Part shown: one piece after another, positions 6,986 through 55,934 of the stretch
Layout of the letters: every line of letters begins with the position of its first letter
Numbering within the stretch: position 1 is the first letter of the stretch
Assembly: GCF_011386835.1 (NCBI RefSeq)
Contig: NC_088791.1
Span: 88,598,001 to 88,662,000 of the forward strand
Source of the DNA: Chrysemys picta bellii
Taxonomy: Eukaryota
Reading direction: 5' to 3'
DNA: 64,000 bases
Translations under genes and position numbers: made by a program
Notes under the pieces: model-generated
Told to the model about the DNA's origin: nothing
The model's database searches: none
The model's input: the letters and a program-made list of their open reading frames with translations, nothing else

Positions 6986-7016
6986 AACCCCTCTTGCAAC
7001 CCCCTAAAAATCCAAA

Positions 7017-7057
7017 GGCTCTTTTAAGAGCCACCACGTTCACACGGAAAAGAGCTG
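7017..7057 (+). terminator. Histone 3' stem-loop plus HDE
   Basis: GGCTCTTTTAAGAGCC 7017-7032; AAAAGAGCTG 7048-7057. Confidence 0.97.
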
Positions 7058-7525
7058 TATCTATGCTTTAATGTTTTAAGAGGCTTACAAAGATGCTATC
7101 CCTGAGGAAGATAAAACAGCTCGTTGTTAATCTAGGATTTTCGTGGTTTTTTTTTAAAAGCTTAATGTGTGTGGGGGGTGGTTCCTTATCTTTAGAGCTC
7201 CCGTAAAATAACATACATCGCTTCCCGCGTTACTGGCCAGATAGTAAATCCCTTGCGTTCAAAAGGCTCATGTAGGTGCGCACTCATTTTAAGCCGTGTG
7301 TGTGGCTTTCACTGAGTCTTGGTGTTTGTGTATGCCCAGTTAGAAAGTAAGGAACTAACATGTTTTATCGAGAGAGAAGCGTTGTACAGAAAACCCAATA
7401 ATTTAAGCAGTTTCTCTAAAATTTAATTTCGTACCCTAGAGCTAAGTAGCTCCATTAAATAAAAACAGAAGCACTGATATCGCTCTAGCAGGTTTCTCTA
7501 CCGAAAAAGGAACATGCAAGCACAA

Positions 7526-30740: not shown

Positions 30741-32712
30741 AGGTGCGGTCGAGGACGGCGCCCCAGTCATCCCCCAGGATCCAGCCCCCTCCTTTCGGGA
30801 TCGCCTCTCCCACTTCCACCGTGTTTGGTGCCTTATAACTTCGGACCGTTGGGTCCTTCGCACGGTGGAGAGGGGATACGCTATCCAGTTTTCTTCAATC
30901 CCCCCCTCCCACCCCCCTTCCCCGTCCCTCTTCAGGGACCCTTCTCACGAGCAACTTCTTATACAGGAAGTTTCTACGCTCCTCGCTATGGGGGCCATAG
31001 AGGAGGTTCCAGTGGAGTTAAGGGGCAGGGGATTCTATTCCCGTTACTTCCTCATTCCCAAGTCCAAAGGAGGTCTGCGACCCATCTTGGACTTGCGCGG
31101 ACTCAACAAATTCGTAGTAAAGTTGAAGTTCCGCATGGTCTCTCTGGGGGCCATTATCCCTTCCCTCGATCCTGGAGACTGGTTCGCCGCCCTCGACATG
31201 AAAGACGCATACTTTCACATTGCTATTTACCCGCCTCACAGACGCTTCCTGCGATTCGTGGTAAACAGGGTGCACTACCAATTTGCAGTCCTTCCCTTCG
31301 GCCTATCCTCGGCCCCACGGGTGTTCACGAAATGTATGGCTGTCGTGGCAGCGTACCTTCGTCGGCAAGGGATACAGGTGTTCCCGTACCTAGACGACTG
31401 GCTGGTGCGCGGTCGCACCAAAGAACAAGTTCGAGATCACGTCCACATAATAGTGCACACATTCAACAAGTTGGGTATCCTACTCAACAAGGACAAATCC
31501 ACTCTAGAACCTACCCAGAGAATAGAATTCATCGGCGCGGTTCTAGACTCCAGACGCGCACAAGCCATCCTGCCAGACAATCGCTTTTGCACCATCACGA
31601 GCCTCATTCAAGGACTCAAGGCCTTCCCAACTACCACGGTGAGGTCGTGCCTTACCCTGCTGGGTCACATGGCTTTCTGCACGTACGTAACCAGGCATGC
31701 CAGACTTCGGCTTCGCCCACTCCAGACCTGGGTGTCATCAATATACCGCCCACATCGGGACAGCCTGAACATGGTGGTCACAGTCCCGAACTCGGTCCTG
31801 ACCTCCCTCACATGGTGGCTAGATCACAATGTGGTTTGCGAAGGGATGCCGTTTCACGCCCCACAACCCTCTCTGCATCTGGTCACAGACGCTTCATCTC
31901 TGGGTTGGGGCGCCCATCTCAACGAGCACCATACCCAGGGCGTGTGGACTGCACCCCAGCTAGCCCTGCACATCAATGTTCGGGAACTGATGGCGGTGCG
32001 CCTGGCGTGCCAGGCATTTCTCAATCTCCTACGTGGCCGCTGTGTGTTAGTTCTCATCGACAACACCACGGCCATGTTTTACATCAACAAGCAAGGAGGA
32101 GCACGTTCGTCAATTCTATGCCAAGAGGCCATTCGCCTGTGGGACTTCTGCATCGCCCACTCAATCCTTCTCACGGCATCGTTCCTCCCTGGAGTCCAGA
32201 ACACTTTAGCGGACCGACTCAGCAGGTCCTTTCAAACACACGAGTGGTCTATCCGTCCGGACATCATACATTCCGTTTTCCAGAAGTGGGGGTTTCCCCA
32301 GATAGACCTGTTTGCATCTCGAGACAACAGGAAGTGCCACGTGTTCTGCTCCCTGCAAGGTCGAGCTCCGGGCTCCCTCTCGGATGCGTTTCTCCTTCCC
32401 TGGAAAGACCACCTGTTTTATGCCTTCCCTCCGTTTCCTCTGGTCCACAAGGTACTGCTCAAATTGCGCAGAGACCAGGCACAGGTGATTCTGATCGCCC
32501 CAGCGTGGCCGAGACAACATTGGTACACCACACTGTTGGAACTCTCGGTTCAGACACCGATCCCGCTTCCATTATGTCCAGATCTCATCTCTCAGGACCA
32601 CGGCCGGCTGCGTCACCCCGACCTGCAATCGCTCCACCTCACGGCGTGGTTGCTCCATGGTTCACCCAGGCAGAGCAACAATGCTCGCACTCGGTCCAAC
32701 AGATTCTGCTGA
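30655..32712 (+). CDS. DIRS ORF2: RT - RNase H - DNA adenine methyltransferase-like domain, uninterrupted
   Basis: YSRYFLIPK, LDMKDAYFHI, LPFGLSSAP, YLDD, TDAS..GWGA, HINVRELMA, DNTTA, DRLSR, IDLFAS, YAFPPF. The true start is uncertain. Confidence 0.95.
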   Translation: MVEEGGPALNLVRTRGHLDHLQAPGRTFEGAVEDGAPVIPQDPAPSFRDRLSHFHRVWCLITSDRWVLRTVERGYAIQFSSIPPSHPPSPSLFRDPSHEQLLIQEVSTLLAMGAIEEVPVELRGRGFYSRYFLIPKSKGGLRPILDLRGLNKFVVKLKFRMVSLGAIIPSLDPGDWFAALDMKDAYFHIAIYPPHRRFLRFVVNRVHYQFAVLPFGLSSAPRVFTKCMAVVAAYLRRQGIQVFPYLDDWLVRGRTKEQVRDHVHIIVHTFNKLGILLNKDKSTLEPTQRIEFIGAVLDSRRAQAILPDNRFCTITSLIQGLKAFPTTTVRSCLTLLGHMAFCTYVTRHARLRLRPLQTWVSSIYRPHRDSLNMVVTVPNSVLTSLTWWLDHNVVCEGMPFHAPQPSLHLVTDASSLGWGAHLNEHHTQGVWTAPQLALHINVRELMAVRLACQAFLNLLRGRCVLVLIDNTTAMFYINKQGGARSSILCQEAIRLWDFCIAHSILLTASFLPGVQNTLADRLSRSFQTHEWSIRPDIIHSVFQKWGFPQIDLFASRDNRKCHVFCSLQGRAPGSLSDAFLLPWKDHLFYAFPPFPLVHKVLLKLRRDQAQVILIAPAWPRQHWYTTLLELSVQTPIPLPLCPDLISQDHGRLRHPDLQSLHLTAWLLHGSPRQSNNARTRSNRFC

Positions 32713-33713
32713 GCAGTAGGAAGCCTTCAACACGGACCACATACTTGGCCAAGTGGAAGCGGTTCTCCTGTTGGTGCGAACAACGAGCCACGTCCCCGTT
32801 ACAGGCACCTATTCCTCTCATATTGGAATATCTCCTCTCCCTAAAACAGCAAGGGTTGGCGATATCTTCAATTAGAGTTCACCTGGCCGCTATATCAGCC
32901 TTTCACCCAGGAGAACTCGCGTCCTCGGTATTCTCTAACCCGATGGTCGTTAGATTCCTCAAGGGCTTAGACCGGATGTACCCACAACAACGTCAGCCCG
33001 TTCCGACGTGGGACCTCAACCTGGTTCTCTCCAAGCTCACAGGTCCTCCATTCGAGCCACTGGCCACCTGTTCACTTTTGTACCTATCCTGGAAGACAGC
33101 CTTCCTCGTAGCCATCACCTCAGCAAGGCGCGTTTCTGAACTCAGGGCGCTTACATCCGAGCCCCCTTACACAGTTTTCCATAAGGATAAAGTGCAGCTT
33201 CGTCCACATCCTGCCTTTCTCCCTAAGGTGGTTTCCCCTTTTCATATCAACCAGGATATATTTCTCCCGGTCTTTCATCCTAAACCACATGCCACTCGCC
33301 AGGATCAACGTTTGCATTCTCTGGACGTACGCAGGGCCCTGGCCTTCTATATTGACCGCACAAGGCACTTTAGAAAGACGACGCAACTCTTCGTTGCAGT
33401 GGCCGACCGAATGAAAGGCTCACCGGTCTCCTCACAACGCCTATCCTCCTGGATTACGTCTTGCATCCGGACTTGCTATGACCTGGCAGGTGTCTCAGCA
33501 CCGCACCTCACCGCTCACTCCACGAGGGCCCAAGCTTCCTCGACGGCTTTCCTGGCGCAAGTTCCGATCCAGGACATTTGTAGAGCTGCGGTTTGGTCAT
33601 CAGTCCACACGTTTACAGAGCACTATGCACTAGTGCAGCAGTCCAGGGACGATGCTGCCTTCGGATCAGCGGTTTTGCACACAGCAATGTCTCACTCCGA
33701 CCCCACCACCTAA
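30825..33713 (+). CDS. DIRS ORF3: tyrosine recombinase (long N-terminal overlap with ORF2), uninterrupted
   Basis: ITSARRVSEL (R), AHSTR (H-x-x-R), WSS, FTEHY (Y) in the C-terminal ~350 aa. Confidence 0.93.
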   Translation: MVPYNFGPLGPSHGGEGIRYPVFFNPPLPPPFPVPLQGPFSRATSYTGSFYAPRYGGHRGGSSGVKGQGILFPLLPHSQVQRRSATHLGLARTQQIRSKVEVPHGLSGGHYPFPRSWRLVRRPRHERRILSHCYLPASQTLPAIRGKQGALPICSPSLRPILGPTGVHEMYGCRGSVPSSARDTGVPVPRRLAGARSHQRTSSRSRPHNSAHIQQVGYPTQQGQIHSRTYPENRIHRRGSRLQTRTSHPARQSLLHHHEPHSRTQGLPNYHGEVVPYPAGSHGFLHVRNQACQTSASPTPDLGVINIPPTSGQPEHGGHSPELGPDLPHMVARSQCGLRRDAVSRPTTLSASGHRRFISGLGRPSQRAPYPGRVDCTPASPAHQCSGTDGGAPGVPGISQSPTWPLCVSSHRQHHGHVLHQQARRSTFVNSMPRGHSPVGLLHRPLNPSHGIVPPWSPEHFSGPTQQVLSNTRVVYPSGHHTFRFPEVGVSPDRPVCISRQQEVPRVLLPARSSSGLPLGCVSPSLERPPVLCLPSVSSGPQGTAQIAQRPGTGDSDRPSVAETTLVHHTVGTLGSDTDPASIMSRSHLSGPRPAASPRPAIAPPHGVVAPWFTQAEQQCSHSVQQILLSSRKPSTRTTYLAKWKRFSCWCEQRATSPLQAPIPLILEYLLSLKQQGLAISSIRVHLAAISAFHPGELASSVFSNPMVVRFLKGLDRMYPQQRQPVPTWDLNLVLSKLTGPPFEPLATCSLLYLSWKTAFLVAITSARRVSELRALTSEPPYTVFHKDKVQLRPHPAFLPKVVSPFHINQDIFLPVFHPKPHATRQDQRLHSLDVRRALAFYIDRTRHFRKTTQLFVAVADRMKGSPVSSQRLSSWITSCIRTCYDLAGVSAPHLTAHSTRAQASSTAFLAQVPIQDICRAAVWSSVHTFTEHYALVQQSRDDAAFGSAVLHTAMSHSDPTT

Positions 33714-34246
33714 GTTGGGCTTGGGAGTCACCTAATGGAATGGATATGAGCAAGCACTCGAAGAAGAAAAGACGGTTACTCACCGTTGTAACTGTTGTTC
33801 TTCGAGATGTGTTGCTCATATCCATTCCAAACCCGCCCCCCGTCCCCACTGTCGGAGTAGCCGGCAAGAAGGAACTGAGGGGGCGCCGGGTCGGCTGAGG
33901 TATATATTCAGCGCCATGAAGGCGCCACTCTAGGGGGCTCCACAGCCGACCCGCCGGTGTTGCTAGGGTAGAAAATCTTCCGACGATCGTGCACGTGGCG
34001 CGCACACACCTAATGGAATGGATATGAGCAACACATCTCGAAGAACAACAGTTACAACGGTGAGTAACCGTCTTTTCTTAAATAAAATAAAAGGTTTGCA
34101 GAACTGATGAATGGGGAAGACAACCTTTCTCTACCTTTCTGGAGAGGTGGCTTTAACACTAGGGCTTCAGATCACCAAGATGACAATTCTGCTAATTATG
34201 CAAAAGACATTGCTGATTATCCTGTGGAAGCTGCATACCCTGAATA

Positions 34247-46770: not shown

Positions 46771-49321
46771 CCAGACTATGGCTACGGCCATTACAATGAG
46801 ATGTAGCTCATGGCTACACGTCTCGGGACTCCCAGCGGAGGTCCAGAATACAATACAGGAGCTTCCATTTGACAATGCGGGGCTGTTCGCTGACAAGATG
46901 GACTCAAGACTGCACAGTGTGAAGGACTCACAAGCAACCCTCAAGCCTCTGGGAATTCACACGCCAGCACCCCAGAAAAAGCCCTTCAAGCCCCATCCCC
47001 CCTCATGCTTCTATTCAGGGCCCCTTAGGCAGGACTATAATCGACGGGGGGCAGAAACAACAGGAGGGGTCCTCCACAGTCTTTCTCTGGAGTTCAGGAA
47101 CCAGATTGCGCCTTCGCCCCCTCCAGGCTTGGTTGGCGAAGGTATACAGACCCAGCTAGGGCCCTCTGGACAGATTGGTTACCCTCCTGCCCCCGATTCT
47201 TGAGTCCCTCAGCTGGTGGCTACAACCTCAGATGGTCTGTGTGCGGGAGTGCCCTTTGCCAAACCTCAGCCCTCACTGTTGCTGGTCATGGACACATCAG
47301 AGATGGGCTGGGGAGCGCACCCGGGCAGTATCAGAACTCAAGGCCTGTGGTCACAACCAGAACTATCGCTGCATATCAATGTCAGAAAGCTGAGAGCTGT
47401 TTGCCTGGCTTTCCAGACGTTCCAGGCCCATCTTCAGGGCAAATGTGTCTCAGTGATGACGGACAACACCACAGCGATGTTCTATATGAACAAACAGGGT
47501 GGTGCTCGCTCTTCTCCCCTGTGCTAGGAAGCTCTCCGACTGTGGGATTTCTGCATCGCACACTCCATCCAGCTGCAGGCCTCATATCTGCCGGGAGCAC
47601 AAAACGAACTAGTGGACCACCTCAGCTGCTTGTTCAACACTCACGAGTGCTCACTCAGAGCGGACATTACCCTTTCCATCCTCCAGAGGTGGGGCTATCC
47701 CCACATGGACCTGTTTGCGACGCAGAGCAACAGAAAGTGTCAGCTGTTCTGCTCCTTTCAGAACCACAGCCACGTCTCCATAGCAGACGCTTTTCACCTC
47801 CCGTGGATGGGTCACTTGCTATATGCATTCCCGCCCTTCCCTCTCATACACAAGATCCTCCTCAAGGTCCAGCTGCTCAGGGCTTTGGTGATACTCATAG
47901 CACCAGCGTGGCACCGCCAGCTCTGGTTCACCTTGTTGCTGAACCTATCAGTGGCTAGGCCAATAGCCCTTCCTATGCTCGCGGACCTCATCACGCAGGA
48001 CCACGGTCAACTACAGCACCCCAACCTGGCGTCCCTCCACCTCATGGCGTGGAAACTCCATGGCTGAACCCGCTTGAACTACAGTATTCGCTTTAACGTT
48101 TAACGCTTGAACTACAGTATTCAGACCCTGTTAGGAAAGTCCTATTGGGGAGCAGGAAGCTCTCCACTTGCACAACGTACCTGGTGAAGTGGAAGCGTTT
48201 CTCCATTTGGTCCCTACAGAAAGGTACCTCCCTGCAGAAAGCCTCTATTCTCCTTCTGCTAGACTACCTTCTGTATCTGAAGCAACAGAGGTTGGAGATA
48301 TCATCTATTAAGGTGCACCTGGCTGCCATCTTGGCCTTCCACTCAGGTGTAGCAGGTAGGTGTGACAATGCGGTTCTGGCGGAACCCAACTGAGAGTGCC
48401 AACTCAGGACAAATTGCTCAAACAGGGCAGTTACAGCCCAAGGCTGGGGTTTTTTCCACCTCTAAGGCAAACCAAACCAGCCAGACTAAGAGGACTCCAG
48501 TCTCACCCCACTGGCTAACTGCAAGTCTCACAAGCAATCTCCTTAGACACTCCAGTTTCCCAGTATTACCACCAGTACCACTCGTTATGGGGACAAATGG
48601 TTATGAAAACCAATACCCCAGTAAAAGAAAAAGGTTCTCCTGATCCCAAAGGACCAAGCCCCAGACCCAGGTCAATATACAAGTCAGATCTTACCCACAA
48701 ATCACGCTGTTGCCAATCCTTTAGAATCTAAAATCTAAAGGTTTATTCATAAAAGGAAAAAGATAGAGATGAGAGTTAGAATTGGTTAAATGGAATCAAT
48801 TACATACAGTAATGGCAAAGTTCTTGGTTCAGGCTTGCAGCAGCGATGGAATAAACTGCAGGTTCAAATCAAGTCTCTGGAATACATCCCCAGCTGGGAT
48901 GGGTCCTCAGTCCTTTGTTCAAAGCTTCAGCTTGTAGCGAAGTTCCTCCAGAGGTATGAAGCAGGATTGAAGACCAGGTGGAGATCAGGCATCAGCCTTA
49001 TATAGTCTTTCCCAGGTGTTCTTACTGTGGAAAATTACAGCAACATGGAGTCTGGAGTCACATGGGCCAGTCCCTGCATACTTTGCTGAGGTACAAGGCG
49101 TATCTGCCTTCTCTCAATGGGTCCATTGTATAGCTGATGGTCCTTAATGGGCCATCAAGCAGGCTAGGCAGAGCTAATCTCAGCTTGTCTGGGATGTCAC
49201 CCAGAAGCATAGCATAAGTTTGCCATACAGACAGTATAGAGCCAATATTCATAACTTCAACTACAACACTGATACACACATATAGACAGCATAATCATAA
49301 CCAGTAAACCATAACCTTGTC

Positions 49322-52300
49322 CTAGACACCCCATTTGACCCCCTTTATACAAGATTTGGGTGCCACTACAGGACCTTGGTTGCAACAATGATCTATATGG
49401 TCCCAGTTTATGTCAATAACGTCACACCCCCAACGCAAAATTGATGCAGGAAGGGATGACACAAACATCACTGACTGCATCCCAAGAGCTCCCCATCCTG
49501 GGTTCTGTCTCACTACAGCTAGTATTGGGTTAGAAGCCATACCAGTGTATAACAGAAACGGTTTATCAAAATCATGTTCAACCACATGATTGAACCTCTT
49601 TACAAACTCAAGGTAACACTTAGTTAGAACAATAGTGGATTGGATCTGCTCTGGCAGCATGGTTCCTGTATGTGCCATGTGATCTTGCCAAGAGCTAAAG
49701 AAAACTGCTACTTTATCCATACAAGCTCGGGCCAATGTTTGGAACCCAATTAACATCGAATAAATGCAGATATTAATGTTCTTCATAGTCCAGGAATCTT
49801 GGCATTTAGCCATGAAAGCAATATGGTAGTGTGCCTCAGTCTTCCTTTTCATATAGCACATTAGGTCTGGAATGTTCTTTCCCCTGTGAAAAGTTCCCAT
49901 ATTGTTTATATGCATTGCCTGTGAAACCCCAGTGTAACAAGGCCTTTTAACATAATGTGTGTTTTCATGTATTCCTTTTAACATGTCCAAGGGATTCTCC
50001 AAAAGATTAGGCACATTGTATATTTTTACAGTTTGTGGCAATAGCAACACATTAATTACAAAATTTAGCAATAACAACAAGTTCATTGCAAGTGTCCATC
50101 TACAGTCATGCTTGTCATGCCACCCCTTTGGCTCAATACCATTGGAGTTTGGGCATTTTAGGGTTAACCTGTGGCTTCCCTTTGCAAAATTCAGTTTTCT
50201 CTTTCCTCCTTGTCCTGCAGGATCAAACCCTGATTTCTCTTGCTTAACAGAATTCACTGGCTGATGGGGTGGGCCCTCTTCGCTAACAGCTATTAGCAAG
50301 TTCTTCCTTTCCCAGCCAGTCAAGTAATTTGCACTACCCCAGACCAGAGCCAATCCACCAGTTTTCATATTCGCAACTGCTATCATCTCCAAGGCTGGAC
50401 TCTGTCTTAAAGAGATACCACACAAATTCAAAGAGTCTGCGGGTGAGAGTTTGCTTGCTCTCCCCCGCATCCTCAAGCATTCAGCCATAAAACTGCTCTG
50501 CTCTGACACATCAGTAACCAAATCTGTCCTCAAACCCTGAAGCACAAACTGCTCATTTAAAGAATCAGAAAGGAGACATTCCTGTTCCAACACCATTGTC
50601 TCCCCAACAAGTTGGCCCCACACAGCCACTTGGTTATAGGGATGCCTCAATTCCTTAACAACTTTTACTTCCTCTGAGACCTTCTCAAAGCTACCCACAC
50701 TGGATCTTTTACAAGGAAAGTTAGTGGATCCCTTCACAACAGACAATTTTTGGCTGCTAGGAACTGAAACTTCCTTGATTAAATCACTCTCACACCCTTC
50801 AGTTGCAGGGAACTGCTTGCACCGAGTACCATGAGGATTCCTTTCTCCAGGAGCTTTTCTAAGCAGCAATTCACCCCTCACAGAAATTCTGCCCTTACCC
50901 TCTTCACCTAGGGCTTGCTCTAAAGGCACACTTTCCTGAGCAACAACAGACTCTGTCTGGGTCTTACTTACATTCAGGATCACCTTTGGCCCATCAGGCA
51001 GATTTCTATACAATCCCCTTTCAGGCGAACCCATAGACTTCCTAGATAAAAGGTTAGAAATACTTCCCTTCTCTTTGCCACACACAAGCTTAGGAATTTT
51101 TTCCTTTTTGCTACAAGTTGTTAAACTGTCCGTAGGTAACACAACCAAATTACCTTTCGGCTCTCCTTGTGCCCTGGCTAGGGTATCACCCTGATCAGAC
51201 AGAGTTGTTACACCCTTCTCCAACCACACATGAGCAACAGGCAAAATACAAGCACCAGAATTGTTTGGTCTCTGGGATTTTGCTAAGCCGCTAACTGGAT
51301 GCAACCTAGTTACGGGGCCATTCTCCCCAGCAGATGCAAACTTAGGACCATTCCCTTCCTGGGCTTTAGTTGAATCCAGAACCAACTCTGAGACAACTAA
51401 ATGACTCTCAACCATCACAGGCCGAAAGGCACCTTCTGTCTGCTCCACAGACAAAAAAGAGTTGGAGACGCATTTTCCTTTACTAGACATACTGTTTGGG
51501 ATTTCATTTCCCTTGTCCCAGCACACCGGGCTGTTCACAGACAACTGCTTGGAGACTGGGGTAGCTTCCTCCATAGGCAAGTCAATACCCCTGACAGACA
51601 CAGGCACATTTCCTTCACTGTCACTATTCTTCGCACAGGAAACAGATAAGGTATAGGGACACTCATCTTCCACCCTCCTTGCCTTCCCAAACTGCTGACT
51701 AGATAAAGCCATCAGCTCACAAGACTGCCTAGGCTCATCCAAAATCTCCTTGTTCTCCTCTCCCTTCACTTGATCTAATTCCAGATTTACTTCTGAGACA
51801 TTAGATAGACATTCAGAAACTTCATTCACAGCCAAACAGCTACTTTCCAAAGACAAAATTTTGGAGAAACCCTCCATAGGCACAACCTTAGGATCAATCC
51901 TCTCTTGTGCCTGGTTTGTATTAACTTGACTGACCATAGCTTTAATATCATTTCCAATCATAATATCCTTAGGGATTATGTCTTTTACTCCCACAACCAT
52001 GGTGCCCTCAAATCCCTTCCATTTCAGGTGGATTTTAGCCAAAGGCACCCTGACAAAATACTTAGATAAGGCTACAACAGTTACATCTTCACCTGGCAAA
52101 TAATCTTCCTTCCTGACAAGACTTGCTTTAACCAGAGTAATATCTGCTGCGGTGTCCCTCCATGCCATACACCTCACTCCATTCACTTCTGCACTGCTAA
52201 TAAACTCTGCATTATTTCCCCCATATTTAGCTTTAATGTGAGTTTTAAGGTTAAATCCTTCAGAGACAACAGAAACAGCATTTGCACACAGGGCACCAAT

Positions 52301-53539
52301 GCTGGGCTCTGTGTGGCTTGCCTGTGAGTTTACAACAATAGGGTTAGCATTGGCCGTGGCATTTGGGGTTGCTGGTTTTGGGCTGCCCTTCAGTGTCGGG
52401 CAGTCTGGTCTCATGTGGCCCAGCATACCACAGCGATAGCATGTAACCTGCTGGGGATGTGAGTTCCTACCCTCCGGGCCCCCTTGAACTCCTTTAGAAG
52501 AGTCAGGTTTATTTTTAAATCCTTCCCTCCTCTTGAACTGGGGAGAATGGTGATCAGTTTTCCCCGGGGTTTTACACCCTTCTCGAGCCCTGTTTTGGGT
52601 ATGGGCATCCGCAATCTCTGCCGCCCGTAGGACTGACTCAGGGTCCCTGTCACACACAGCTGCTCTCACATTGTCAGGCACAATGTCTAAGAACTGTTCC
52701 AAAGTTATTAAATCCAGCAGTTTTTCAAAACTCCCATGAACCTTGGCTCCCATAACCCACTTTTTAACAAAACCCATCAGCTTATGAGCACATTCTACAA
52801 AAGTACAATCCTTAGACATTTTAAACTCTCTAAACTTAACTCTGTAAGATTCAGGAGTAACCTTGAATCGCCTTAACACAGAATCCTTAAACCGCTCATA
52901 ATTTAAGGCTTCTTGTTCCCCCAAGTCATTAAATACCTCCCTGGCTTTTCCAGTCAGTCTGGTCAGCAGGACAGGCATTCGCTGACCCTCAGGGATCTGG
53001 TACAGATTGCAGAGGCGTTCAAAGGTAGACAAAAACTCCTCTATATCCTCAGTATCATTGTAAATGGGACACATCCTTTCCCAGTTTTTCTCATGGCGGG
53101 GGGGAAGTGGAGTACCAGGTGGGGATGACTTTCTCCGCTCTTCCATTACTTGGAGCTGAAGTCTGGCCGTCTCCTGTTCCATCTTGTGAGTCTCCTGTTC
53201 CATCCTGTGAGTCTCCTGTTCCGCAGCGAGCAGCTCTAGACGCCCCTTACGAGCTCTCTCTTCTAACTCTGCTATTTTGTGCTTCTCCAGCAATCGAAGA
53301 TCTGCTAGCTTCTGTTCATGCTCAAATTGCAGTTTACTTGTCACCCTTTGCATCCTAATTTTTTCTGCATCTTCTGCAGCCTCAGGTAAGGGCTGTGCTC
53401 TTGCCCCCTGATCACTGGCTATTAGCAGATTTCTCAATTCTTCCTTTGTAGCTTTCTTTCTAAAGCTTATCCTCTTTTCTGAACACAAATTTTCCAGGGC
53501 TTTTTTCCCAAGTCCCTCATATGCTCTTTGCTCAGCCAT
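49322..53539 (-). CDS. 1405-aa polyprotein: helical N-terminus, coiled coil, SCAN-like capsid, CCHC knuckle, protease-like DTAA, then a pol-derived region without RT/IN catalytic motifs
   Basis: IEEFLSTFER...LTGKA...TPESYRVKFR...LEQFL; CYRCGMLGHMRPDC; AWRDTAADITLV; no YxDD, HHCC or DDE found; RNase H-like DFDKPFLLYTG near the end; the stop lies inside the 3' LTR. Confidence 0.85.
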   Translation of the reverse strand: MAEQRAYEGLGKKALENLCSEKRISFRKKATKEELRNLLIASDQGARAQPLPEAAEDAEKIRMQRVTSKLQFEHEQKLADLRLLEKHKIAELEERARKGRLELLAAEQETHRMEQETHKMEQETARLQLQVMEERRKSSPPGTPLPPRHEKNWERMCPIYNDTEDIEEFLSTFERLCNLYQIPEGQRMPVLLTRLTGKAREVFNDLGEQEALNYERFKDSVLRRFKVTPESYRVKFREFKMSKDCTFVECAHKLMGFVKKWVMGAKVHGSFEKLLDLITLEQFLDIVPDNVRAAVCDRDPESVLRAAEIADAHTQNRAREGCKTPGKTDHHSPQFKRREGFKNKPDSSKGVQGGPEGRNSHPQQVTCYRCGMLGHMRPDCPTLKGSPKPATPNATANANPIVVNSQASHTEPSIGALCANAVSVVSEGFNLKTHIKAKYGGNNAEFISSAEVNGVRCMAWRDTAADITLVKASLVRKEDYLPGEDVTVVALSKYFVRVPLAKIHLKWKGFEGTMVVGVKDIIPKDIMIGNDIKAMVSQVNTNQAQERIDPKVVPMEGFSKILSLESSCLAVNEVSECLSNVSEVNLELDQVKGEENKEILDEPRQSCELMALSSQQFGKARRVEDECPYTLSVSCAKNSDSEGNVPVSVRGIDLPMEEATPVSKQLSVNSPVCWDKGNEIPNSMSSKGKCVSNSFLSVEQTEGAFRPVMVESHLVVSELVLDSTKAQEGNGPKFASAGENGPVTRLHPVSGLAKSQRPNNSGACILPVAHVWLEKGVTTLSDQGDTLARAQGEPKGNLVVLPTDSLTTCSKKEKIPKLVCGKEKGSISNLLSRKSMGSPERGLYRNLPDGPKVILNVSKTQTESVVAQESVPLEQALGEEGKGRISVRGELLLRKAPGERNPHGTRCKQFPATEGCESDLIKEVSVPSSQKLSVVKGSTNFPCKRSSVGSFEKVSEEVKVVKELRHPYNQVAVWGQLVGETMVLEQECLLSDSLNEQFVLQGLRTDLVTDVSEQSSFMAECLRMRGRASKLSPADSLNLCGISLRQSPALEMIAVANMKTGGLALVWGSANYLTGWERKNLLIAVSEEGPPHQPVNSVKQEKSGFDPAGQGGKRKLNFAKGSHRLTLKCPNSNGIEPKGWHDKHDCRWTLAMNLLLLLNFVINVLLLPQTVKIYNVPNLLENPLDMLKGIHENTHYVKRPCYTGVSQAMHINNMGTFHRGKNIPDLMCYMKRKTEAHYHIAFMAKCQDSWTMKNINICIYSMLIGFQTLARACMDKVAVFFSSWQDHMAHTGTMLPEQIQSTIVLTKCYLEFVKRFNHVVEHDFDKPFLLYTGMASNPILAVVRQNPGWGALGMQSVMFVSSLPASILRWGCDVIDINWDHIDHCCNQGPVVAPKSCIKGVKWGV

Positions 53540-53636
53540 TGCAGCAGCTCTTTAACCAACAAAACTCTCAATCCCAAAATTCAAATTTGGATAGCGTGGG
53601 GTTCTGACCCAAAGCTTAATTGACCTGGTTCTGTGG

Positions 53637-53654
53637 ATCCTGCCGACTACGCCA
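53637..53654 (-). promoter_or_regulatory. Primer-binding site complementary to the tRNA-Ser 3' end
   Basis: TGGCGTAGTCGGCAGGAT, 1 nt after the 5' LTR; matches the vertebrate tRNA-Ser(AGA/UGA) 3' end ATCCTGCCGACTACGCCA as recalled. Confidence 0.85.
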
Positions 53655-55934
53655 CTGTGACAATGCGGTTCTGGCGGAACCCAACTGAGAGTGCCAACTC
53701 AGGACAAATTGCTCAAATAGGGCAGTTACAGCCCAAGGCTGGGGTTTTTTCCACCTCTAAGGCAAACCAAACCAGCCAGACTAAGAGGACTCCAGTCTCA
53801 CCCCACTGGCTAACTGCAAGTCTCACAAGCAATCTCCTTAGACACTCCAGTTTCCCAGTATTACCACCAGTACCACTCGTTATGGGGACAAATGGTTATG
53901 AAAACCAATACCCCAGTAAAAGAAAAAGGTTCTCCTGATCCCAAAGGACCAAGCCCCAGACCCAGGTCAATATACAAGTCAGATCTTACCCACAAATCAC
54001 GCTGTTGCCAATCCTTTAGAATCTAAAATCTAAAGGTTTATTCATAAAAGGAAAAAGATAGAGATGAGAGTTAGAATTGGTTAAATGGAATCAATTACAT
54101 ACAGTAATGGCAAAGTTCTTGGTTCAGGCTTGCAGCAGCGATGGAATAAACTGCAGGTTCAAATCAAGTCTCTGGAATACATCCCCAGCTGGGATGGGTC
54201 CTCAGTCCTTTGTTCAAAGCTTCAGCTTGTAGCGAAGTTCCTCCAGAGGTATGAAGCAGGATTGAAGACCAGGTGGAGATCAGGCATCAGCCTTATATAG
54301 TCTTTCCCAGGTGTTCTTACTGTGGAAAATTACAGCAACATGGAGTCTGGAGTCACATGGGCCAGTCCCTGCATACTTTGCTGAGGTACAAGGCGTATCT
54401 GCCTTCTCTCAATGGGTCCATTGTATAGCTGATGGTCCTTAATGGGCCATCAAGCAGGCTAGGCAGAGCTAATCTCAGCTTGTCTGGGATGTCACCCAGA
54501 AGCATAGCATAAGTTTGCCATACAGACAGTATAGAGCCAATATTCATAACTTCAACTACAACACTGATACACACATATAGACAGCATAATCATAACCAGT
54601 AAACCATAACCTTGTCCTAGACACCCCATTTGACCCCCTTTATACAAGATTTGGGTGCCACTACAGGACCTTGGTTGCAACAATGATCTATATGGTCCCA
54701 GTTTATGTCAATAACGTCACAGTAGGTCAGTCTTTGGAAATCCCATGGTTGGTCGGTTTTTCAAGGGCTTGGACAGGCTTTATCCGCAGATGTGGCAGCC
54801 CATTCCCCAGTGGGATCTCAACCTAGTTCTCTCCAGACTTATGGGCCCCCCCTTTGAGCCTTAGCAACCTACTCTCTATCCTACCTGTCCTGGAAGGTGG
54901 CTTTTCTGGTGGCCATAGCTTTAGGGTTCAGACAGAAGAGTCTCTGAACTCAGAGTGCTGACTTCCAAGCTTCCTCCCCAAGGGTTTTTATAAATACAAG
55001 GTGCAACTATGCCCTCACCCAGCATTCCTACCCAAGGTAGTCTCACACTTTCATGTAAACTAGGACATATTTCTACCAGTATTCTTTCCTAAACCTCATG
55101 CCAGCAACAGAGAGCGAGTACTCCATTCTCTGGATGTCAGGCATGCCCTAGCCTTCTACACTGAATGCACAAAGCCGTTTTGTAAGTCACCACAACTCTT
55201 TATTGCAATCGCCGAAAGGATAAAAGGGCTTCCCATCTCATCTCAGTGCATTTCGGCGTGGATCACGTCCTGCATCAGAACATGCTACGACCTGCCTAAG
55301 ATTCCAACCCCAGCATTGATGGCGCTCTCCACAATAGCGCAGGCTTCTTCTGCCGCATTCCTCGCACAAGTCCCTATTCAGGACATATGCAAGGCAGCAA
55401 CATGGTCTTCCATCCACATCTTCATGTCGCACTATGCCATCACTCAACAGGCGAGAGACAATGCGGCCTTCGGCAGGGCAGTACTTCAGTCAGCAACTCA
55501 GTGAACTCCGATCCCTCCTCCGTTGAAACGGCTTGGGAGTCACCTATTGGAATGGACATGAGCAAGTACTTGAAGAAGAAATAACGGTTACTTACCATCT
55601 CATAATTGTTGTTCTTCAAAATAAGTTGCTCATGTCCATTCCAAATCCTGCCTGCCTCCTCTCTGTCGGAGAAGAAGGAACTGAGCAGGTGGTGGATTGG
55701 CAGGGGCCTATATACACTGCCATGAAGGTGCCACTCCAGGGATAAAACCTAGGGTAAAATCTTCTGACGATTGTGCATGCGGCACATGTGCACACACCTA
55801 TTGGAATGGACATGAGCAACACATCTTGAAGAACAACAGTAACAAGATGGTAAGTAGCTGTTTTTTTATTTATTCATATGTTTAAAATCACAGGAAAAAT
55901 TATTTATATTAGAAACAAGAGGAAGATGAAGGGA

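Follow-up and report, generated by a model that had tools for sequence, protein, structure and literature searches.

A Gmr1-like LTR retrotransposon of Chrysemys picta bellii with a selected gag, a decayed pol in open frame and a probable autonomous helper

Non-autonomous long terminal repeat (LTR) elements that are mobilised by a partner with common LTRs and cis signals include ETn, with MusD, in mouse and MaLR, with ERV-L, in mammals; the internal region of ETn is non-coding and unrelated to its helper. BARE-2 and BARE-1 of barley form a comparable non-autonomous/autonomous pair. To our knowledge, gag-encoding non-autonomous LTR partners are well described in plants and hardly so in vertebrates. 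At wheat centromeres, the non-autonomous Ty3/gypsy element RLG_Quinta carries gag and an open reading frame (ORF) stretch of unknown function, with no reverse transcriptase (RT) or integrase (IN); it shares primer binding site, LTR termini and polypurine tract with its partner RLG_Cereba, recombines with it and is 28–35 My (million years) old (PMC11302176). RLG_Sabrina/WHAM is a similar pair as cited in the same paper (PMC11302176). Non-autonomous Athila elements of Arabidopsis have intact ORFs under purifying selection on the protein, and their lineages arise via recombination between distant families (PMC2410132). Here, we describe an LTR element of Chrysemys picta bellii, which lies on the minus strand at positions 48361–54721 of a 64-kb stretch of contig NC_088791.1 (64,000 nucleotides, the whole of which is referred to below as the window). 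It is almost certainly a semi-autonomous, Gmr1-like element with a selected Gag and a dependence on a helper, and the explanation that we are inclined to favour overall is that it is a parasite of that helper whose dead-pol tail is kept only as frame.

Like Quinta and Cereba, the turtle element has gag and an extra ORF stretch, shares cis signals with an autonomous partner and has most likely recombined with it. Quinta and Cereba are, however, plant chromoviruses with the domain order protease (PR), RT, RNase H (RH) and IN, whereas the turtle element is vertebrate and Gmr1-like, with IN before RT. Unlike that of Quinta, its extra ORF can be traced to a decayed pol and remains in frame at a ratio of non-synonymous to synonymous change (dN/dS, or omega) of about 1, and its family, being turtle-wide, looks much older. 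It differs from Athila in that constraint applies to gag and in part to the protease-like domain, the long remainder keeping frame and not sequence, and from ETn in having an uninterrupted ORF of 1405 codons that includes a selected gag.

This ORF and its parts, numbered in amino acids (aa) from the start codon, are as follows.

49322–53539, minus strand: single ORF, 1405 codons plus stop; starts at 53539, crosses the polypurine tract and stops 103–105 nt (nucleotides) into the 3' LTR
52355–53539, minus strand: Gag, aa 1–395; SAP-like N-terminus, coiled coil, SCAN-like capsid C-terminal domain, CCHC knuckle
52586–52855, minus strand: SCAN-like capsid C-terminal domain, from Pfam
52397–52444, minus strand: CCHC knuckle, from Pfam
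51860–52222, minus strand: protease-like domain, aa 440–560, by alignment; DTA for DTG at 52148–52156
51047–51859, minus strand: X1, aa 561–831; open frame with no detectable origin, predicted to be unfolded
50774–51046, minus strand: pre-integrase relic, aa 832–922; the only weakly constrained island
50129–50773, minus strand: X2, aa 923–1137; in the place of the integrase zinc finger and core, no similarity left
49769–50128, minus strand: integrase C-terminal (SH3-like) relic, aa 1138–1257; BLASTP against helper aa 956–1066, E 4e-7
49610–49765, minus strand: RT motif-C relic, aa 1259–1310, by BLASTP; YIDD changed to CMDK at 49712–49723
49529–49573, minus strand: RNase H start relic, by local alignment; catalytic Asp lost (helper TDAS, here TGMAS)

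The SCAN domain is derived from Gmr1-like elements, and Pfam recognises it in the ORF at aa 229–318 (E 1.5e-13), together with the CCHC knuckle at aa 366–381 and nothing else; no RT, integrase or RNase H was found, and the post-protease region was without domains here and in ten related proteins. The other five frames hold 3–18 stops per 150 codons, so the open frame of ~850 codons beyond the protease is not due to chance, and the ORF frame has a coding-like, G-rich first codon position down to ~aa 1050. The SAP-like motif at the N-terminus of Gag occupies 53417–53512 of the window (aa 10–41), and a relative from Emydura, P0026, has a sub-threshold Pfam match to SAP (E 0.003). In the coiled coil that follows, the repeat number differs among copies, always by multiples of 3 nt.

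The proteins nearest to the ORF product are 'uncharacterized' models of Chrysemys picta bellii of 1430, 1441 and 1430 aa, ~95% identical, with partial models in Trachemys and Terrapene. The close set that we compared consists of the window copy and the DNA of four Chrysemys copies (n = 5). In each of the five, the two LTRs are 99.8–99.9% identical, whereas different copies diverge by ~2% internally and by 3–5% in the LTRs, so most of the differences must have arisen in active lineages and not after insertion.

In such active lineages, selection is likely to act on the frame and on nothing more. Between the window copy and its relative in Caretta, 187 of 1218 nt differ, evenly over the codon positions (65/56/66), and neither an indel nor a stop is present; simulated under neutrality, this comparison gives 5.8 stops expected and a probability of 0.003 for none. 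Pairs of young copies have accumulated 2–5 indels per 1066-nt LTR, whereas each of the same pairs has a single indel in 4113 nt of ORF, located in the gag coiled coil and measuring 33, 75 or 108 nt. The frame is also retained in Pelodiscus and Emydura, over 360–560 codons, at an aa identity of 34–43%. Four of the five close copies, the window copy counted, are open over 1405–1441 codons (1428–1441 in the open Chrysemys sisters). In the remaining one, L009, one CAG codon has turned into TAG at the equivalent of aa 1001 and 11 codons have been deleted in frame, and a Trachemys copy, L010, is frameshifted; these two lesions indicate that inserted copies decay, with no protection at the level of the host. 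The proposal made in a preliminary description of this stretch, that selection maintains the open frame, is thus supported by sisters and distant turtles alike, which hold the frame with almost no stops and with in-frame indels only. That description had also held that frequent stops in sister copies combined with a dN/dS near 1 would speak against such selection; dN/dS is indeed near 1, but the stops are not frequent.

Selection on the amino-acid sequence is confined largely to the first part of the ORF. The gag gene is constrained in all comparisons (omega 0.05–0.29, significantly below 1): the five young emydid copies differ by 26 synonymous and 16 non-synonymous changes (omega ~0.24, p 5e-6), and the window copy gives 0.26–0.29 against both helper and Emydura (p < 2e-4). 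For the protease, omega between window copy and helper is 0.17. Over aa 561–1346, the five young copies have 28 synonymous changes, 86 non-synonymous changes and 1 stop, which corresponds to an omega of ~1.2 (p 0.47 versus neutral), and the changes are spread 45/41/29 over the codon positions. Maximum-likelihood omega for the X region is 0.85 against Caretta, 0.78 against Chelonoidis, 0.85 against Pelodiscus and 0.78 against Emydura, none of these being significantly below 1. The only block with repeatedly lower values is aa 832–922, at 0.43, 0.47, 0.37 and 0.64 against Caretta, Chelonoidis, Pelodiscus and Emydura, respectively (p 0.03, 0.06, 0.003 and 0.17; these are not four independent values, as the window lineage is common to all), and outside this island there is no invariant motif across turtles. 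Alignment-based AlphaFold models have a pLDDT of 37.8 and no secondary structure over aa 561–1140 and a pLDDT of 30.2 over aa 1100–1405, and a feature search of the ESM Atlas gave no usable match, with a low recognition score; the post-protease region is predicted to be unfolded. The open frame had been ascribed either to a repurposed protein or to translation itself. With omega at 0.8–1.2, an even spread over codon positions and pLDDT values of 30–38, the evidence favours translation over a protein, and the novel Gag-extension protein that had been envisaged finds no support as a folded or sequence-constrained product, apart from the weakly constrained island of ~90 aa.

What precedes and underlies the X region is a protease and a pol in decay. 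The protease-like domain retains ~45–50% aa identity to the helper protease, its motif reads DTAAD at aa 462–466 in place of the DTGSD of the autonomous relative, and alignment of the sea-turtle relatives shows the catalytic Asp to be gone. Searches by BLASTP against the helper, by hhalign and by local alignment recovered relics of the pre-integrase, the integrase C-terminus, RT motif C and the RNase H start, which follow one another in the original order and are all in the gag frame. The pre-integrase relic corresponds to helper ~aa 582–687, at the protease–integrase junction (BLASTP E 8e-8, hhalign probability 81%). Relative to the helper, the N-terminal half of RT, with the fingers and the palm that lie before motif C, has been deleted or erased, as have most of RNase H and the zinc finger and core of the integrase. 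The preliminary account was right about the altered protease motif, about the SCAN-like and CCHC parts of gag, and about a pol erased down to remnants in Gmr1 order. Of the remnants that it named, the pre-integrase and the RNase H start with its lost Asp are real, and the stretch NLLIA...VNSVKQ is not significant against the helper (BLASTP E 1.3). The RT motif-C relic is real too, and the integrase C-terminal relic at aa 1138–1257 comes in addition.

The origin of X1 and X2 was sought by self-BLASTP and by Smith–Waterman alignment with shuffled controls. None of the scores is convincing: z is 1.1 for X1 against the pre-integrase relic, 2.3 for X1 against the helper linker and 0.7 for X2 against the helper integrase. 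X1 may be a duplicated linker in the emydid copy, but this is unproven. A clear tandem duplication of a ~50-aa X unit (VLD.TETQ, then GWDKG) is present at 7000–7500 of the Emydura locus L008, and in Emydura only; the X region can thus grow by in-frame duplication.

An exhaustive phmmer search with aa 560–1405 returned 26 clusters, and the ten that were looked up with an organism name are all from turtles. Homologues of the post-protease region occur in Chelonoidis and Caretta (71% identity), Chelonia, Pelodiscus (37%) and the side-necked turtle Emydura (42%). The Emydura locus is young (LTRs 99.7% identical) and combines a SAP-like/SCAN/CCHC gag with the X region in one frame of 937 codons, without a protease. 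In the Pelodiscus locus (LTRs 97% identical), a coiled-coil N-terminus is joined to X in a frame of 867 codons that ends 50 nt before the LTR; X has been retained there and capsid and knuckle have been lost. The IN-to-RT deletion junction of the emydid copies is also found in a Pelodiscus protein, in which motif C reads GLDK, and this common junction indicates a single origin of the deletion derivative, earlier than the split between the two cryptodire lineages. The primer site with the 12 nt that follow it and the polypurine block are nearly identical in the emydid, Emydura and Pelodiscus lineages. Three Chelonia mydas models and a database protein (P0043, P0044, P0045 and P0028) fuse long open stretches of the X region with olfactory receptor, DDE transposase, zinc-finger or Maestro HEAT-repeat proteins; these are almost certainly annotation chimeras. 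In the Chrysemys copy L001, a 185-nt inverted duplication at 7247–7434, at the 3' LTR junction, alters the last codons of the ORF and explains an 'intron' in the gene model.

Several points weigh against selection on the frame alone, or lessen the force of the evidence for it. The copies compared, five close and four distant, came from protein databases or were picked for long ORFs, so that open copies are over-sampled. A census of contigs from four public runs placed 33 of the 40 best-supported variants in aa 561–1346, 6 of them synonymous, 27 non-synonymous and none a stop, with 1-nt indels few and either rare or in compensating pairs; this census is weak, since contigs drop rare variants and two of the runs, marked 'RNA?', may be DNA. 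The RNA evidence consists of low-depth contigs in one RNA-seq run, and contigs are silent on transcript ends, strand and expression level. The ORF of the Emydura element ends ~480 nt short of the 3' LTR, which makes extension to the LTR no strict rule. The persistence of X without a capsid in Pelodiscus fits selection on the frame only, but it fits a role of X itself as well. Finally, the G-rich first codon positions and the omega of ~0.4–0.6 at aa 832–922 imply that some selection at the protein level exists.

These last observations lead to the alternative that fares best, in which the extension is a working, disordered tail of Gag, selected for length, composition or short motifs and not for sequence. 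It might, for example, be a stand-in for Pol that lets the polyprotein co-assemble with the helper Gag-Pol, with aa 832–922 as the place at which helper proteins cleave or dock. Full disorder is what is predicted for the region, but an omega of 0.8–1.2 is above our estimate for a disordered region at work. The island, with omega at 0.37–0.64 and its similarity to the helper protease–integrase junction, would suit a docking site, but outside it no motif is invariant across turtles. Similarly, the 1405-aa ORF is near the 1530 aa of the helper, but length is not conserved among the three deep lineages (1405, 937 and 867 codons). With the conservation of the protease-like domain despite an altered or lost catalytic motif, first codon positions that are G-rich throughout and an X that persists in Pelodiscus without the capsid domain added on its side, we still regard a working tail as unlikely.

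It is much less likely again that there is no selection on the frame, the copies being young descendants of one master of which only open ones were sampled. All five emydid LTR pairs are at least 99.8% identical, the single stop among the five copies compares with ~4 expected, and decayed copies do exist, L010 being frameshifted and L009 having one stop, all of which would agree with such a history. But the frame is kept without indel or stop at 15% DNA divergence, for which the neutral probability is 0.003, and it is kept in Pelodiscus and Emydura too; indels are common in the LTRs and absent or in-frame in the ORFs of the same copies; and four separate pol relics all lie in the gag frame. 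That the region hides a complete, if very divergent, RT, integrase or other folded enzyme, or that the locus is a gene domesticated by the host in the manner of SCAN-ZFP or PNMA-like gag genes, is hardly credible: short IN, RT and RNase H relics are detectable, but YIDD has become CMDK, the RNase H Asp is lost, deletion or erasure has removed the RT fingers and palm and the zinc finger and core of the integrase, profile searches found no such enzyme, Pfam being silent after the protease in the ORF and its ten relatives, pLDDT is 30–38 and omega ~1, and, as for domestication, there are several LTR insertions at different loci, a target duplication here, and decay of the inserted copies.

For an element without working protease, integrase, RT and RNase H, copying and insertion would fall to an autonomous Gmr1-like partner, and the need for such a helper, anticipated in the preliminary description, is confirmed, with an actual partner to match it. 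The protein P0002, encoded at locus L004 of Chrysemys picta, is one ORF of 1530 aa with the order SCAN-CCHC-PR-IN-RT-RH, comprising Integrase_H2C2 (672–729), rve (751–844), then an integrase C-terminal domain, RVT_1 (1153–1312) and RT_RNaseH (1377–1506), with a protease motif DTGSD; the LTR pair of L004 is 99.6% identical. The window element and L004 share ~94% DNA identity over the LTR, over leader and gag to ~aa 395, and over the last 75 nt with the 3' LTR, and between ~aa 395 and the last 75 nt they cannot be aligned. LTR termini and polypurine block match, and the primer site is common for its first 11 nt. An autonomous/non-autonomous pair is characterised by a shared primer binding site, shared LTR termini and a conserved polypurine tract, with one partner devoid of RT and integrase (PMC11302176), and these shared signals, together with the missing coding capacity for RT and integrase, are what we find here. 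As young copies of both are present in Chrysemys (LTR pairs 99.6% identical for L004 and 99.8–99.9% for the non-autonomous copies), cross-mobilisation may be inferred. In Gmr1-like elements, which are reported to be abundant in turtles, integrase precedes RT (PR-IN-RT-RH; bioRxiv 10.1101/2025.03.03.638093). The helper has this order, the relics in the window ORF repeat it and the capsid domain is SCAN-like; by domain order and capsid, the element classes as Gmr1-like within Ty3/gypsy.

The boundary between shared and private parts is sharp. Against the helper, gag has a synonymous divergence (dS) of 0.10, whereas the adjoining protease is saturated, at 50% aa identity; this break suggests that the LTR–gag module was recently exchanged with the helper family and that the interior is an old private lineage. 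Most likely, the LTRs, primer binding site, leader, gag and polypurine region are common to both partners through repeated recombination. No helper was found for Emydura in the protein collection searched, so that repeated gag/LTR exchange is seen only for the emydid pair.

The terminal repeats and insertion site of the window copy are described by the following features.

53656–54721, minus strand: 5' LTR, 1066 bp, TG..CA; one base different from the 3' LTR, 94% identity to the L004 LTR
48361–49426, minus strand: 3' LTR, 1066 bp, TG..CA; ORF stop at LTR positions 103–105, TATAAA at 78, AATAAA at 680
48356–48360 (left copy) and 54722–54726 (right copy), no strand: target-site duplication GTAGG, 5 bp; perfect repeat, in agreement with a paralogous empty site
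53637–53654, minus strand: primer binding site TGGCGTAGTCGGCAGGAT, 18 nt, one base past the 5' LTR
49427–49460, minus strand: polypurine tract and conserved 3' cis block; GGGGG tract before the 3' LTR, read through by the ORF

The insertion is that of a recent, intact LTR retrotransposon. Its sole LTR mismatch in 1066 bp is at position 48423, the GTAGG duplication is perfect, and TGGCGTAGTCGGCAGGAT is complementary at 18 of 18 positions to the last 18 nt of tRNA-Ser-AGA/TGA, the tRNA sequence being the mammalian, not the turtle, one, as printed in PMC10359600; the recent transposition that these three features had suggested is thereby confirmed. A search of the window and of ten loci for a tRNA-Ser gene with which to compare the primer site found none. 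In the autonomous L004 and the non-autonomous L003, the sequence just after the 5' LTR is a variant, TGGCGTAGTCG followed by TGCTTGGATCC, which matches tRNA-Ser for only ~11 nt, so either a shorter match suffices or another tRNA primes. The insertion is hosted by an older DIRS-like element, with flanks at 47101–48347 and 54739–55866. Both flanks are collinear with a diverged DIRS-like (DIRS1) copy at 31700–34076 of the same window, at 67–69% identity, which serves as a paralogous empty site; the unaligned junction bases, summed over both sides, are 30 nt against 25 nt, which gives a duplication of exactly 5 bp. Other copies or solo LTRs of the family are absent from the window. The element does not have the non-coding interior of TRIM or LARD elements, since its 1405-codon ORF includes a gag under purifying selection. 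TATAAA at position 78 of the 3' LTR (window 49322–49426 being LTR positions 1–105) is a candidate promoter, guessed from the motif; if it is the promoter, U3 would be only ~105 nt long and the ORF would end at the U3/R border. The only AATAAA of the LTR, at position 680, is likewise a putative polyadenylation signal.

How a parasite with a dead-pol tail might come to keep that tail as frame can be outlined as follows. The ~850 post-protease codons would be the remnant of pol left by one old set of in-frame deletions, made before softshell and hard-shelled turtles split. In the helper family, genomic RNA is presumably translated as one gag-pol ORF that ends just before the 3' LTR, and in the helper examined here the ORF indeed ends ~56 nt before it; with such an arrangement, a stop after gag or protease gives a very long 3' untranslated region (UTR). 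A derivative that stopped after gag would have a 3' UTR of ~3–4 kb and might lose its genomic RNA to long-3'-UTR nonsense-mediated decay (NMD) or a similar translation-dependent process, whereas the RNA of copies with a frame open as far as the 3' LTR would be retained and packaged. Full-length retroviral RNA with a long 3' UTR is a target of NMD, and Rous sarcoma virus depends on a stability element placed after its gag stop (PMC2925335). The virus has the difficulty in common with such a derivative, as a stop of gag at a great distance from the 3' end gives genomic RNA the look of an NMD target (PMC2925335), but where the solution of the virus is an RNA element after the stop, the turtle element would never stop at all. 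A frame open to the LTR would be the simplest escape from NMD and would fit all the patterns seen; as the actual cause of the open frame, we propose NMD avoidance as a possibility, short of a probability. Somewhat more tentative still is the full proposition that ~850 codons have been kept purely as open frame in a lineage as old as crown turtles, with amino acids unconstrained and uninterrupted translation itself a fitness trait, by way of an escape from long-3'-UTR NMD or some comparable ribosome-dependent protection.

The case adds a clear parasite/helper pair from a vertebrate, with the helper as the source from which gag and LTRs are renewed, a parasite lineage that is turtle-wide and hence old, and an unusual signature, in which frame is kept and sequence is free. 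For annotators, it is a caution that a long open frame modelled as an 'uncharacterized protein' in a turtle genome can be an unconstrained spacer ORF. If the signature holds across a full census of copies, it would offer a testable handle on how RNA surveillance shapes the architecture of retroelements, and, if it is true that the frame alone is kept, the family would amount to an experiment, natural and replicated, on how RNA surveillance and retroelements come into conflict.

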